DNA of 64,000 nucleotides from Pseudomonas aeruginosa PAO1 (GCF_000006765.1 NC_002516.2), one strand, 5' to 3'; counted from the first letter of the stretch, positions 7,890-50,694 are shown. Numbers and translations are program-made. Notes: generated from the sequence alone by a model not told the origin.

Positions 7890-8130
7890 GCCGCGCGACC
7901 CGTCGCCGATCCCGACTCGGGTGCGCCGCGAGGCTTCGACAGGCGGCGGAGCGGTACGGACGAAACCATTGGCCGCCCGACAGTGACCGAACATATGGCG
8001 AACGATATCCACCGCGCCGATGGAACCACATTGGCGAACCCGGGGCCCCGCCGGCGCGTCCAACGACGGCAGACGCGTCCTGGCCGGCGTGCTAAGGTGG
8101 CCCGTCCCGAGGACCCTGCTGAGGAGAGCA

Positions 8131-9477
8131 ATGCGTAACCCCGAACGATCCGCCCTGCTGAAGGTGAGCGGGCTGCTGGGCAGCACCGTCGTCGCCATGG
8201 GGCTTGGCCTCTCCAGCGCCTGCGCGCAGAAGAATCCGACAGTCGAATACAACCAGCCTGCCGCTCCCCTGCAGACCAAGGCGCCCTTCTCCGGCGCCGG
8301 CCCGGCCGCCTCGGTGCCCGCTGGCGCGCCGAACGAGGCCCAGCCTGGGCAAAGCTTCGAACAGTGGCGCGACGCCTTCCGTCAACAGGCGCTGGCCGGT
8401 GGAATCGATGCGCAGACCTTCGATCGCGCCTTCGCCGGCGTCCAGCCCGATCCCGCCGTGGTCGAAGCAGACCGCAGCCAGCCGGAATTCACCCGACCGG
8501 TATGGAAGTACCTGGAAGGCGCCCTCGATCCGCTGCGCGTTCGCCAGGGCCAGGCGCGCCTGGCGCAGCATGCGCGCATCCTCGGCGAAGTCGACGCGCG
8601 CTATGCGGTGGATGCGGATGCGGTGGTGGCGATCTGGGGCATGGAGAGCAACTACGGTTCGCACATGGGCAACAAGAACGTGATCCGCTCCCTGGCGACC
8701 CTCGCCTATGAAGGACGCCGCCCGGAATTCGCCCACGCCCAGTTGCTCGCCGCCCTGAAGATTCTCCAGCACGGCGACGTTCCGGCCTCCTTCATGATCG
8801 GCTCCTGGGCCGGCGCCATGGGCCAGACCCAGTTCATCCCGACCACCCACAACCAGTATGCCGTGGACTTCGACGGCGACGGCAAGCGTGACATCTGGGG
8901 CTCGCCCGGCGACGCCCTGGCCTCCACCGCCAACTACCTGAAAGCCTCCGGCTGGATCGCCGGACAACCCTGGGGTTTCGAAGTCCGCCTGCCGGCAGGC
9001 TTCGACTATTCCCTGGCGGAACTCACCATCCGCAAGCCCCTGGGCGAATGGCAAGGGATGGGCGTACAAGGCGTCAACGGCGGCCCCCTGCCCTCCGGAC
9101 TCTCCGGCGAACAGGCCTCGCTGCTGCTGCCGGCCGGGCACCGCGGCCCGGCCTTCCTGGTGCTGCACAACTTCCGCGCCATCCTCAAGTACAACAACTC
9201 CAGCGCCTACGCCCTGGCCGTCGGCCTGCTCGCCGACAGCTTCAAGGGCGGCGGCCGGATAGTCGGCGCCTGGCCGCTGGAGGATGTTCCGCTGAGCCGC
9301 TCGCAGCGCATCGAGCTGCAACGGCAACTGGCCGCCCGCGGACACGATCCGGGCGCGGTGGATGGCATCATCGGCGCCAATACGCGCAAGGCGATCCGCG
9401 CCTGCCAGCAGGAGTTCGGCTGGCCGGCGGACGGCTATCCGACCCCGGCGCTGCTCGACCGCCTGCGGACGCCATAG
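8131..9477 (+). CDS. sltB3: Lytic murein transglycosylase, MltB/SltB family, with C-terminal PG-binding domain (SltB3)
   Basis: AIWGMESNYG catalytic Glu, GSWAGAMGQTQF, EF-hand DFDGDGKRD and C-terminal DGIIGANT. Confidence 0.88.
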   Translation: MRNPERSALLKVSGLLGSTVVAMGLGLSSACAQKNPTVEYNQPAAPLQTKAPFSGAGPAASVPAGAPNEAQPGQSFEQWRDAFRQQALAGGIDAQTFDRAFAGVQPDPAVVEADRSQPEFTRPVWKYLEGALDPLRVRQGQARLAQHARILGEVDARYAVDADAVVAIWGMESNYGSHMGNKNVIRSLATLAYEGRRPEFAHAQLLAALKILQHGDVPASFMIGSWAGAMGQTQFIPTTHNQYAVDFDGDGKRDIWGSPGDALASTANYLKASGWIAGQPWGFEVRLPAGFDYSLAELTIRKPLGEWQGMGVQGVNGGPLPSGLSGEQASLLLPAGHRGPAFLVLHNFRAILKYNNSSAYALAVGLLADSFKGGGRIVGAWPLEDVPLSRSQRIELQRQLAARGHDPGAVDGIIGANTRKAIRACQQEFGWPADGYPTPALLDRLRTP

Positions 9478-9536
9478 GGCCGCCGGCGGAGCTTACGACC
9501 CCACGTCCGCCGCGACCGCTCGCGGCACACCGGTTC

Positions 9537-9543
9537 GTAGGGC
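9537..9543 (+). repeat. Left part (GTAGGGC) of the REP interrupted by the IS
   Basis: Joins to 10916-10941 to give GTAGGGCGGATAACGCCATGGGCGTTATCCGCC. Confidence 0.8.
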
Positions 9544-9549
9544 AATGAA

Positions 9550-9562
9550 ATGGACTCCTCCC
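9550..9562 (+). repeat. Left sub-terminal inverted repeat of the IS
   Basis: ATGGACTCCTCCC is the exact reverse complement of 10899-10911. Confidence 0.95.
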
Positions 9563-9622
9563 TCCTACGGCGTCAAGCGCCAGACTAATGGTGCAGCCAC
9601 AAGTCCCGGAGGGGGAGTCAGC

Positions 9623-10639
9623 ATGAACCTTAGTCGCATTGGTCTGGATCTGGCAAAACAAGTATTCCAGGTGCACGGCGTTGATCGTCACGAGCATGTG
9701 GTATGTCGTCGCCAACTCAAGCGGGCACAGGTGCGGGATTTCTTTCGCCAACTGCCGCCGTGCCTGGTGGCGATGGAGGCCTGCGGCAGTGCGCACTACT
9801 GGGCGCGCGAGTTGCGGGAGCTGGGCCACACGGTACGCCTGATCGCACCGCAGTTCGTAAAACCCTACGTCAAGGGTGACAAGCACGATGCACACGACGC
9901 CGAGGCGATCTGCGAAGCCGCCAGTCGTCCGAGCATGCGCTATGTCCCGGTGAAGAGCGCAGAGCAGCAGGCCGTGCAGTCGATGCATCGGGTGCGCAGT
10001 CGTCTAGTGCGGGCCCGCACGGCGTTGTGCAATGAGGTGCGTGGCTTGCTGGGTGAGTTCGGGCTGATCGCGACTCGACGTGGGCGAGCGGCGACGATGG
10101 CCTTGCTCGAAACGGTCATGGCTACCGAGCCGGCGCCCTTGCCGGCCCCGATGGGCGAGCTGTTGCGTGAATTGAAAGATGAATTGCAGACGCTGGAGGC
10201 GCGCATCGCTCGACTGGAGCGACAGATTCAGGCTCACGTACGTGGCGATGCCCGCATCCAGCGCCTGCTGGCGGTGGAAGGCATCGGCCCGATCAGCGCC
10301 AGCGCGGTGGCGGCATCCGCCGGTGATGCACGGCAATTCCGCACGGGCCGCCAGTTTGCGGCCTGGCTGGGCCTGGTGCCACGGCAGCACTCCACGGGCG
10401 GGCAGCAGCGCTTGGGCAACATCAGCAAGCGCGGCGATACCTACTTGCGGACCTTGCTCATCCATGGCGCCCGTGCAGTCGTGCGCTGTTGCGCCAACAA
10501 GACCGATGCCCGCAGCCGCTGGCTGCAAGGTCTGCTGCAACGGCGTCCTGCCAATGTCGTCGCCGTTGCCCTGGCCAACAAGAATGCCCGGATCCTTTGG
10601 GCTTTACTCAGCCGGGAGACATGCTACCGGCCCGGTTGA
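9623..10639 (+). CDS. IS110-family DEDD transposase/recombinase (338 aa)
   Basis: RuvC-like IGLDLAK (D), AMEACG (E), KHDAHDA (DD), plus C-terminal GLVPRQHSTGG carrying the conserved Ser; RBS GGAGGGGGAG upstream. Confidence 0.96.
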   Translation: MNLSRIGLDLAKQVFQVHGVDRHEHVVCRRQLKRAQVRDFFRQLPPCLVAMEACGSAHYWARELRELGHTVRLIAPQFVKPYVKGDKHDAHDAEAICEAASRPSMRYVPVKSAEQQAVQSMHRVRSRLVRARTALCNEVRGLLGEFGLIATRRGRAATMALLETVMATEPAPLPAPMGELLRELKDELQTLEARIARLERQIQAHVRGDARIQRLLAVEGIGPISASAVAASAGDARQFRTGRQFAAWLGLVPRQHSTGGQQRLGNISKRGDTYLRTLLIHGARAVVRCCANKTDARSRWLQGLLQRRPANVVAVALANKNARILWALLSRETCYRPG

Positions 10640-10717
10640 GCGTTCCTGCCACACCGTAGTTGAAACATCCACCACGATTGCTCAGTGAATGACAATGATG
10701 ACGAACCGGTCGAACCG

Positions 10718-10856
10718 GCCTGCATGAAACCTGGTTTATACGTGGGCTCCCTGCTGCAGTGAAGCAAAGCCGTTAGGGCGATCAGGTATGCAGGCGCGCA
10801 TTTCATCAGGGCTCGGGAGTTGCAACACCACTCCATGAAGCCGGATATACGGATGC
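10718..10856 (+). ncRNA. Predicted bridge/seek guide RNA core of the IS (target-binding and donor-binding hairpins); true ends unknown
   Basis: Two tandem stem / internal-loop / GGCT:AGCC-stem structures whose loops match the target REP and the IS circle junction. Confidence 0.75.
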
Positions 10857-10898
10857 AGTCGTACACAGGTTTGAAATCAAGACAAACACTGGCAAACC

Positions 10899-10911
10899 GG
10901 GAGGAGTCCAT
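10899..10911 (-). repeat. Right sub-terminal inverted repeat of the IS
   Basis: GGGAGGAGTCCAT is the exact reverse complement of 9550-9562. Confidence 0.95.
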
Positions 10912-10915
10912 ATAC

Positions 10916-10941
10916 GGATAACGCCATGGGCGTTATCCGCC
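10916..10941 (+). repeat. Right part of the interrupted REP palindrome
   Basis: GGATAACGCC-ATG-GGCGTTATCC palindrome typical of Pseudomonas GTAG-family REPs. Confidence 0.85.
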
Positions 10942-10958
10942 GCTGCGGCGTCCAGGAC

Positions 10959-11849
10959 CTAGTCATCCGCGCAGAACCGCAGGATAGCGTCCGCCACCTG
11001 GGTGGCCGCCTCGCGCTGCGGAAAATGGCCGACGCCCTCCAGCACCAGCCGCTGGTAACGCCCGCTGAAGTAGTGCTCGCGTCCGCGGGAGCCGTCGGGG
11101 TGGGTGCAGGCATCCGCGCCGCCGTGCAGCACCAGGGTCGGCAGCGCCAGGCGCGGTGCCGGGAGCAAGCGCTGTTCCGCCGCCCCGTAGCGCGGCTTCC
11201 CCGCGACGAAGCCCCAGCGATGCCGGTAATAGTGCAGCACCACGGCCACCCAGTCCGGCCCGGAGAAGGCCTGGGCGGCCTCCTGGAAATCGCGCTCGGC
11301 ATACCATCCCGGCGGCGACCAGGTGTCCCACATCTGCCGGGCGAACGCCTCGCCCTCCTCGCGCAGCGCGCGCTCTCCGCGTGGCGTAGCCATGAACCAC
11401 TGGTACCAGAAGCTACGGGCCTGCGGCAGGGAAAGAACTTGCTGCGGATCGTTGCTGGCGTACCCCACCGAGAGCATCACCAGGTGCGAGGCTACGCCCT
11501 CGCGCAGTCCGCAGGCACTAGCCACCGCGCGAGCCCCCCAGTCATGGCCGACCAGCAGGGGACGTTGCAATGCCAGGCTGTCGACGAATGCCAGCAGATC
11601 GCAAGCCAGAGCCGCCAGTTGCCCGCTGCGCGGAGTAGACGCATCGCGGAAGCGGGTCGGGGCGAATCCCCGGAGGGCTGGTGCCAGCACCCGATAGCCG
11701 GCGTCCGCCAGGGACTCCGCCAGGTCTTTCCAGGTATGCGGGCTGTCCGGCCAACCGTGCAACAAGACGGCGCTGCGCGCCCCCTGCGGATTCCACTCCA
11801 GGTAGGCGATATCCAGGACATCGGTGGAAACGAAGGCATAGCGGCTCAT
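10959..11849 (-). CDS. Alpha/beta hydrolase, epoxide hydrolase-like
   Basis: HGWPD, GHDWGA (Asp nucleophile) and GHFPQRE motifs. Confidence 0.88.
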   Translation of the reverse strand: MSRYAFVSTDVLDIAYLEWNPQGARSAVLLHGWPDSPHTWKDLAESLADAGYRVLAPALRGFAPTRFRDASTPRSGQLAALACDLLAFVDSLALQRPLLVGHDWGARAVASACGLREGVASHLVMLSVGYASNDPQQVLSLPQARSFWYQWFMATPRGERALREEGEAFARQMWDTWSPPGWYAERDFQEAAQAFSGPDWVAVVLHYYRHRWGFVAGKPRYGAAEQRLLPAPRLALPTLVLHGGADACTHPDGSRGREHYFSGRYQRLVLEGVGHFPQREAATQVADAILRFCADD

Positions 11850-11942: not shown

Positions 11943-12848
11943 ATGGAAGACCTCATGGAGCTTGCCGTCCCCACCTCCCAATCCCTGGATATCGTGTTGT
12001 TGCGTACCTTTCTCGAAGTGGTCGACAGCGGCGGTTTCGCCCTCGCCGCGGACAATCTCGCGCTCACCCCCTCCGCAGTCAGCGGGCATATCAAGCGCCT
12101 GGAACAGACAGCCGGCGTCAGCCTGCTCAGCCGCACCACTCGCCGCCTGGAGCTGACCCAGGCGGGCGAGACGCTCTACGCCTATGCCCGCAACATCGTC
12201 GAGCTGGAGCGCGAGGCCCGCGCCAGGCTGCACGGCACGCCGATCCGCGACCGCCTGCGCATCGGCGCTTCGGAGGACTTCGCCAGCGCCTGGCTGCCAC
12301 GCGTCCTGCAACGCTTTCGCCGCTGGCACCCCGAAGCATCCATCGAACTCAAGGTCGGTATCACCACCGACCTGCTCCGCCAGCAGGCCCAGGGGCGCAC
12401 CGACGTGGTGTTCGGCAAGCAGTGCCGGCGGGTAGGAGACGACGGCGAACTGCTCTGGGAGGAACCGCTGGTCTGGGCCGCGGCGACCGCGATCGAGCTG
12501 CCCGCGGGCGAACCGCTGCCGCTGGCGCTGTTCCCCGAACCCTGCGTCTACCGCGAAGCGGCGATTACAGCCCTCGGCGCCGCTGCGCGTCCCTGGCGCC
12601 TGGTGTTCGAGAGCGCCAGCATGGCCGGCTGCCTGTCCGCCGCGCTGGCCGGTTTCGCCGTGACGGTGGTGGCGCGCAGCCAGATGCGCGAGGGGCTACG
12701 CGAACTGGGCCCGGAACAGGGTTTTCCGACGCTGCCGGAGGCGCGTTTCTACGCCTTCTCGCGCCAACCCAGCCTGGCGGCCGATGCACTGATCGAGGCG
12801 GTGCGGCAGCTCGGCCAGCGCAGTCGCTTCGTTACCGCACAGGGATGA
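11943..12848 (+). CDS. LysR-family transcriptional regulator
   Basis: N-terminal HTH (LRTFLEVVDSGGFALAADNLALTPSAVSGHIKRLE) and LysR substrate-binding domain. Confidence 0.95.
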   Translation: MEDLMELAVPTSQSLDIVLLRTFLEVVDSGGFALAADNLALTPSAVSGHIKRLEQTAGVSLLSRTTRRLELTQAGETLYAYARNIVELEREARARLHGTPIRDRLRIGASEDFASAWLPRVLQRFRRWHPEASIELKVGITTDLLRQQAQGRTDVVFGKQCRRVGDDGELLWEEPLVWAAATAIELPAGEPLPLALFPEPCVYREAAITALGAAARPWRLVFESASMAGCLSAALAGFAVTVVARSQMREGLRELGPEQGFPTLPEARFYAFSRQPSLAADALIEAVRQLGQRSRFVTAQG

Positions 12849-50348: not shown

Positions 50349-50694
50349 ACGCGACGAATCTGAAATAGCGCGGAAGAATCTGAAGAAATATGGCAAATCT
50401 CACAGCAGACAAATCGCGCTTGGTAGATTTCCAACCGCTGAGTAGGCCAAGGAGCAAATGGATTGCTCCGACACAGGGATGTGTAAACCCGCTCCGGCGG
50501 GCCGTGGAACGAGACCACTCGAACCACAGTCAGGGGTCGGTAACGGACGATCGCCCCAGGCAACCGAGCCAATCCCCCCAGGGCTGGCTTCGACACACGG
50601 ATGTGTCATCTCCCCTTCCTTGTTCGAATCATCCCCTCCCGCTATCCGGACGCCTCGATCCGCGTCCCATCCTGGATCTGAAAAGGACCTCATC

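Follow-up and report, generated by a model that had tools for sequence, protein, structure and literature searches.

Within a 64,000-nt stretch of the Pseudomonas aeruginosa PAO1 chromosome (GCF_000006765.1, NC_002516.2; hereafter "the window", with positions counted from its first nucleotide and features on the + strand unless marked otherwise), a 1372-bp insertion sequence, ISPa11, lies at 9543–10914 (+), with limits set by empty sites in three genomes, an occupied site in a fourth, and the published flank of the PAO1 copy ISPa11-2. The element carries the transposase gene tnp (9623–10639), preceded by 80 bp and followed by 275 bp of non-coding DNA, the long region downstream of tnp being typical of the IS1111 group. 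ISPa11 occupies the 109-bp spacer between genes for a lytic transglycosylase with a peptidoglycan-binding domain (SLT_2, PG_binding_1; 8020–9477, +) and an alpha/beta hydrolase (about 10959–11849, −), so that no gene is interrupted; a LysR-type regulator follows at 11943–12848 (+). Elsewhere in the window, the small RNA RsmV (RF04320) was found at 50437–50626 (+; 121.5 bits vs. a gathering score of 100, E = 1.8e-33) as the sole Rfam match of the 64 kb at gathering thresholds, and no tRNA genes were found.

The ends were delimited from empty and occupied sites, found by looking up the neighboring hydrolase protein (10962–11849, −) in public assemblies. Three P. aeruginosa genomes (L082–L084) carry the empty site as ...GGTTCGTAGGG-C-GGATAACGCC... 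(in another extract, ...CACACCGGTTCGTAGGG-C-GGATAACGCCATGGGCGTTATCCGCC...), which corresponds exactly to the window flanks meeting at one C and gives an insert of 1372 bp and no target duplication, as the preliminary description of this locus had read from the sequence. A further P. aeruginosa genome (L081) has an identical element at this position (1972 nt compared, 0 mismatches). Positions 9543 and 10915 thus hold one and the same C, the shared core base, and the element can be written as 9543–10914 or equally as 9544–10915; the latter, proposed initially, differs from the published convention only in the junction to which the shared C is assigned. The interrupted target is a REP sequence, with a left half, GTAGGG, at 9537–9542 (+; from the published ISPa11-2 alignment and the empty sites) and a right half, CGGATAACGCC ATG GGCGTTATCCG, at 10915–10939 (+; from a repeat search and the empty sites), the latter an 11-bp palindrome with arms at 10915–10925 and 10929–10939. 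Site-specific insertion without target duplication, another hallmark of the IS1111 group, is therefore found here, into a REP as published (ISPa11 target GTAGGG*CGaATAACCGC).

Just inside the ends lie the sub-terminal inverted repeats ATGGACTCCTCCC (9550–9562, +) and GGGAGGAGTCCAT (10899–10911, +), recovered by repeat search and matching the geometry of 63 relatives. They form a perfect 13-bp pair, within the 7–17 bp expected of IS1111 elements at a position slightly inside the ends, and no further exact copy of the repeat was found within the 64-kb window. Measured from ends at 9543/9544 and 10914/10915, the distance to the repeats is 6–7 nt and 3–4 nt, exactly as first described, while the earlier figure of about 260 bp of non-coding DNA after the stop codon agrees with 275 bp to the element end and 259 bp to the right repeat.

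The tnp gene (coding part 9623–10636, stop codon 10637–10639), defined from the open reading frame (ORF), Pfam and alignments, encodes a 338-aa recombinase with a DEDD RuvC-like domain (PF01548, DEDD_Tnp_IS110, 2e-16) and a Transposase_20 domain (PF02371, 9e-25) containing GLVPRQHSTGG. Across an alignment with 24 relatives, D9, E52, D89, and D92 are invariant, as are G250, P253, G259, and G260, and S257 is nearly so. When the profile of this alignment was compared to IS621 and ISCro4, D11/E60/D102/D105 of IS621 fell on D9/E52/D89/D92, and the RuvC-like D-E-DD residues ascribed at the outset to a 338-aa protein are hence confirmed. The GL-P----(S/T)G motif of the IS1111 group reads G250-L251-V-P253-RQHS-T258-G259. 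The HSTGG serine listed in the preliminary description stands only in part: the motif is present at residues 256–260, but it is T258, not S257, that aligns with the nucleophile of IS621, Ser241. Position 258 is Thr in ISPa11 and Ser in most relatives, and the TG variant of the motif has already been described for IS1111 transposases. The T258 codon corresponds to 10394–10396, and ≥90% of relatives keep the adjoining S257.

The region is almost certainly an intact copy of ISPa11 (IS110 family, IS1111 group) inserted in a chromosomal REP palindrome of P. aeruginosa. Its protein is identical at 338 of 338 residues to the ISPa11 transposase given by Siddiquee et al. 2024 in their source data (PMC11187229), and its non-coding region agrees with the text of their Supplementary Table 1 except at ~4–5 positions, a count that excludes three stop-codon bases included in the aligned stretch. 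These differences are probably reading errors: the table text was machine-read from a PDF, and the inverted repeat would be broken by one of them. Tobes & Pareja 2006 (Additional file 2, PMC1525189) aligned all six PAO1 copies of ISPa11 together with their flanks; the window sequence upstream of 9543 is the flank of copy "ISPa11-2", and the right-end text matches as well, so that this copy had previously been catalogued and the element already named. Set against the ISPa11 reference, the window copy has the same 338-aa transposase, non-coding region, ends, sub-terminal repeats, REP target (GTAGGG*CG.ATAAC), and ISPa11-2 site, and no difference was found in protein, non-coding region, ends, or flanks beyond the published-text discrepancies. 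The initial suggestion that ISPa11 is an element of this kind was accordingly well placed, as the copy is ISPa11 itself. A megablast search of a plasmid collection yielded one weak 111-bp match only and no annotated ISPa11 copy, and a scan of genome contigs with one genome per species returned no identical copy, the best being 80% identical.

Both ISPa11 and its guide RNA are already known. REP targeting was published in 2006 (PMC1525189), and PAO1 is reported to hold six identical copies at different REPs, with >1000 distinct insertions overall (PMC11187229). RNA from the downstream non-coding region co-purifies with the transposase, TnpPa11 (Siddiquee et al. 2024, PMC11187229), and the ISPa11 seekRNA, in 96-nt and 172-nt forms, was co-purified, sequenced, and mapped to the target (PMC11187229; preprint 10.1101/2024.04.26.591405). 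In the same year, Durrant et al. (PMC11208160) predicted a bridge RNA for ISPa11, and the legend of their Extended Data Fig. 10c includes it among six elements for which left and right target guides (LTG, RTG) and left and right donor guides (LDG, RDG) are drawn. The earlier suggestion that the guide layout might be undescribed thus does not hold, to judge from that legend and the seekRNA reports. Transposition and reprogramming have been demonstrated for ISEc11 and ISEc21, and the published evidence for ISPa11 consists of RNA co-purification and target matches.

To compare the element with its relatives, we scanned one genome per species and obtained 80 loci encoding proteins with 48–80% identity; the RNA alignment was built from 52 distinct non-coding regions (relatives with 51–71% protein identity). 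A common layout, [x]AATGrr-ATGGAC ... GTCCAT-ATA[y], was recognized in 63 of the 80 loci. The junction bases x (left) and y (right) are the same in nearly all 63 (C/C, T/T, or A/A), which supports a single shared core base. Left and right junction bases differ in four loci (L012, L017, L025, and L047, with C/T, C/T, C/T, and T/G, respectively), which might be explained by insertion at a target whose core was mismatched. Two relatives depart from the common organization. In a Thiobacillus MAG (L026), the 3′ non-coding region is 467 nt, i.e., ~190 nt longer, with a REP-like palindrome, GCGTTATCCACC...GGTGGATAACGC, near its end at the expected position of the donor loop, and the guide region may have received an insertion here. 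In a Pseudomonas MAG (L008, 67% identity), a 136-nt non-coding region stops just past the first stem, without any of the four guides and without a proper right repeat, and looks like a decayed copy.

The consensus fold obtained with RNAalifold from the 52 non-coding regions comprises 26 pairs, 16 of which show compensatory changes. These pairs are formed in 95.2% of cases vs. 77.6% in column shuffles, with 0 of 500 shuffles reaching 95.2%, although such shuffle statistics overstate independence because the relatives are phylogenetically related, and the figures are not probabilities. Controls in which the 3′ partners were slid by 1–3 columns retain this relatedness yet collapse to 31–48% formed, which supports a conserved fold as judged from the alignment. 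Folded on its own, the ISPa11 sequence gave the target loop again, but at an unremarkable energy (z = −0.94), and the evidence for the structure is therefore the covariation. Following a conserved small hairpin, CCGGUCGAACCGG (10706–10718, +; consensus helix 2), the target-binding loop module spans 10719–10794 (+) and is defined by RNAalifold and pair counts (helices 3–6, with many compensatory changes) as well as by the single-sequence minimum free energy (MFE) fold. It consists of a closing stem, CCUGCAU/AUGCAGG (10719–10725/10788–10794), a second closing stem, CCU/AGG (10730–10732/10784–10786), and an inner hairpin, GGCU/AGCC (10745–10748/10768–10771), all on the + strand. In the donor loop, an inner stem, GGCU/AGCC (10810–10813/10839–10842, +; helix 7), shows 100% pairing and compensatory changes and appears in the MFE fold; this stem encloses a hairpin, GGAGU/ACUCC (10816–10820/10830–10834, +). 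No Rfam family was detected over the non-coding region, either in a permissive search of 9300–11200 or at gathering thresholds across the whole window; this reflects a missing entry in Rfam rather than novelty.

The same covariation bears on whether the 3′ region encodes an RNA at all. A 95-aa ORF on the opposite strand (10624–10911) appears in a mechanical ORF list, and the region could in principle specify a small protein instead. The equivalent frame, however, stops after a median of 25 codons in 56 relatives, and conservation tracks base-pairing rather than codons. The ORF was rejected on this ground, and we give a protein-coding role a negligible chance.

A further pairing in the consensus fold involves a 5′ segment, GAUGA (10697–10701), and UCAUC (10803–10807), which are paired in 97% of the 52 relatives and whose variable pair is GC in 34, AU in 8, and GU in 7. 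The donor guide pairs with ATGA of the left end through UCAU, its core, so the GAUGA segment mimics the left end, and all three covary. Both strands of this pairing lie outside the 96-nt seekRNA. In the free RNA, as modeled here, the GAUGA segment could mask the donor guide.

Four segments of the RNA, named here as in IS621, follow the element's own target or ends. When ≥6-mers common to each non-coding region and its own flanks were sought without an alignment, two recurring positions emerged, and a column-by-position scan without prior assumptions gave a clean diagonal. In ISPa11, the LTG is UAGGGCG (10774–10780, +), a perfect 7-nt match to TAGGG-C-G that would pair with the bottom strand; across the alignment, columns 139–144 (10774–10779) equal target positions −5 to 0 in 41–46 of 46 elements, vs. 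14–22 expected. The RTG was missed by the column scan because MAFFT columns are out of register in this variable region, and it was retested within alignment columns 89–108 (20 columns from the conserved CCUG stem). The ISPa11 RTG, GUUUAUACG (10734–10742, +), is assigned from the same scaffold position in relatives, where perfect matches of 7–11 nt occur. On average, RTGs match their own core and right target at 7.09 of 9 positions and foreign targets at 5.16 of 9, and for 15 of the 46 elements, the element's own target outscores every foreign one. The RTG of the window copy pairs with 6 of the 9 positions of CGGATAACG and 7 of 9 in the published consensus CGaATAACC, and its score against its own site is equaled by 14 of 45 foreign targets, which weighs against the guide reading.

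The RDG, AUUUCAU (10800–10806, +), is complementary to 9545–9551 in the left end, where repeat search and covariation identify ATGAAAT (+), the right donor in the circle, as the top-strand segment it reads; columns 171–174 are complementary to left-end positions 3–6 in 51–52 of 52 elements, and column 170 forms 32 Watson-Crick and 14 wobble pairs (n = 52). The LDG, AUAUAC (10845–10850, +), reproduces the final 5 nt of the right end followed by the core and would pair with the bottom strand. Columns 218–223 are identical to the element's own right end and core at every position in 52 of 52 elements, and the match holds for the variant ends ATACT, ACACA, ATAGA, and ATCTA. In both loops, the top-strand guide lies 5′ of the bottom-strand guide. 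Taken together, the fold and the guide-DNA covariation independently support RNA guidance of ISPa11 at the level of sequence comparison. Along with the identity of the element, this upholds the original proposal of an intact IS1111-type element with a DEDD and Ser/Thr recombinase and a downstream guide RNA.

Two other matches were considered as guides and set aside. The segment 10701–10710 shows 10 nt of perfect complementarity to the left flank (9529–9538); it was rejected since this RNA segment is scaffold in all relatives, other PAO1 copies have different flanks there, and 34 of 2000 shuffled flanks (1.7%) reach the same length, so that the match is probably due to chance. In addition, a 10-nt direct repeat, ATATACGGAT, occurs at 10845–10854 and 10910–10919 and comprises the LDG, with its core base, and 4 nt, the latter being GGAU (10851–10854), which equals the first four bases of the right flank (10916–10919). 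GGAU was not called as a guide extension, as the match past the core is only 0–3 nt in relatives.

These assignments can be placed on the published RNA. According to the legend of Extended Data Fig. 6b in the preprint (10.1101/2024.04.26.591405), the TnpPa11-bound RNA begins 39 nt and ends 210 nt past the stop codon; in window coordinates, this "long seekRNA" of 172 nt corresponds to 10678–10849 (+) and includes both loops. The same legend gives the 96-nt seekRNA as 86–161, i.e., only 76 nt, and we took 66–161 (96 nt, with the 5′ end inferred) as the short form, which would probably correspond to 10705–10800 (+), the target-loop half. On these legend coordinates, all four guides fall within the 172-nt seekRNA, and the LTG and RTG within the 96-nt form. 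The order of guides in each loop is reversed compared to IS621, as Siddiquee et al. reported.

Before 2024, the transposase alone was thought to recognize the REP hairpin, with the 3′ region contributing only the right end and half of a promoter. That the target is a structured palindrome fits this view, as does an RTG that pairs at only 6 of 9 positions of the window site. Recognition by protein alone would nevertheless leave unaccounted for the four RNA segments, which track their own target or ends across relatives with quite different targets, the compensatory changes that preserve the RNA fold, and the co-purification of RNA from the 3′ region with TnpPa11 (PMC11187229). We therefore consider this explanation highly improbable and retain RNA guidance as the reading that these data favor.

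How the RNA and tnp might be expressed depends on the form of the element. A consensus scan of the integrated copy (9400–11000) returned no match to a sigma-70-like promoter and no intrinsic terminator. ISPa11 is stated to form a circle (PMC11187229), and a promoter assembled at the circle junction is known for the IS110/IS1111 family. In ISPa11, the junction would join a −35-like CTGGCA (10889–10894, +; a sequence match with a putative function) through an 18-nt spacer to a −10 hexamer, TACAAT, composed of TA (10913–10914) and CAAT (9543–9546). Together, the two hexamers give a 9 of 12 match, a score equaled by 53 of 5000 shuffles, and most relatives have TTGCAA, TTGGCA, or CTGGCA followed by TA|CAAT or TA|TAAT in the same place. 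From these matches, we infer that the junction promoter is used by the ISPa11 circle.

A copy intact in sequence could still be silent where it stands, i.e., lacking a promoter of its own, fixed in its lineage, and mainly a passenger. The missing sigma-70-like matches across 9400–11000, a junction promoter that exists only in the circle, and an identical copy at the same site in another genome (L081) are all in line with such a state. Conversely, other P. aeruginosa genomes carry this site unoccupied, which, together with the six identical PAO1 copies at different REPs and >1000 reported distinct insertions (PMC11187229), indicates that ISPa11 moves; the upstream gene also lies on the same strand, so that read-through is possible. 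On balance, we regard a silent copy as improbable.

The sequence of events that we propose for ISPa11 starts with its excision as a circle, known from the literature, in which the right end would be joined to the left via the shared C. The predicted junction reads ...GGAGTCCATATA-C-AATGAAATGGAC..., i.e., ...CCATATA-C-AATGAAATGG..., and would build the sigma-70-type promoter (CTGGCA, 18 nt, TA|CAAT) reading into tnp and the downstream non-coding region. The latter would then yield the RNA of ~172 nt with two internal-loop modules, alongside the 96-nt form, both as published, and this RNA would bind the 338-aa recombinase in the complex described in the literature. Strand exchange at the shared C would be carried out by the DEDD site (D9, E52, D89, D92) and the Ser/Thr of GLxPx4(S/T)G (T258, beside S257), leading to insertion without target duplication. 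By analogy, the chemistry of strand exchange is presumed to be as in IS621.

Close counterparts among described elements are ISEc11, ISKpn4, and ISPst6, three IS1111-group elements with experimental seekRNA (Siddiquee et al. 2024). Like ISPa11, they have a downstream non-coding region and sub-terminal repeats, right ends in ...CATATA or ...CATATG, the scaffold motif GCCGGAUAU(A/G), and a top-strand guide 5′ of the bottom-strand guide. Their targets and guides differ from those of ISPa11 (ISEc11 uses a linear site, ISKpn4 and ISPst6 use attC sites), and it is ISEc11, not ISPa11, that was used in transposition and reprogramming assays. The IS110-group elements IS621 and ISCro4 (structures 8WT6 and 9T56) show low sequence similarity (profile E ~1e-18); their DEDD residues and Ser/Thr-Gly motif align with those of ISPa11, and they likewise use a two-loop RNA in which each loop has one top-strand and one bottom-strand guide overlapping at the core. 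In IS621, this RNA is located upstream, in the left end, while that of ISPa11 is located downstream. ISPa11 is further distinguished from both by a single base demonstrably common to donor and target, by its 13-bp repeats, and by Thr at the nucleophile position.

What remains are small points, namely Thr at the nucleophile position, the tolerated RTG mismatches, and the possible masking of the donor guide by the 5′ segment. These could be combined into a picture of ISPa11 as a naturally relaxed member of the family, with Thr258, a perfect 7-nt LTG, an RTG that accepts two or three REP mismatches, and a GAUGA segment that masks the donor guide. We consider this picture rather unlikely as a whole. 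If it were true, target choice would come mainly from the left guide together with REP structure, and masking of the donor guide would add a layer of regulation that has not been described for bridge RNAs.

Overall, the RNA-guided recombinases of the IS110/IS1111 elements are of interest as programmable tools with which DNA can be inserted, excised, and inverted. ISPa11 is among the few elements for which a guide RNA was first demonstrated, so another chromosomal copy by itself brings the field nothing new. What the analysis usefully provides is an annotation that locates the ends, core base, four guides, and RNA stems exactly, and the published layout is independently confirmed by comparison across 52 relatives with different targets.
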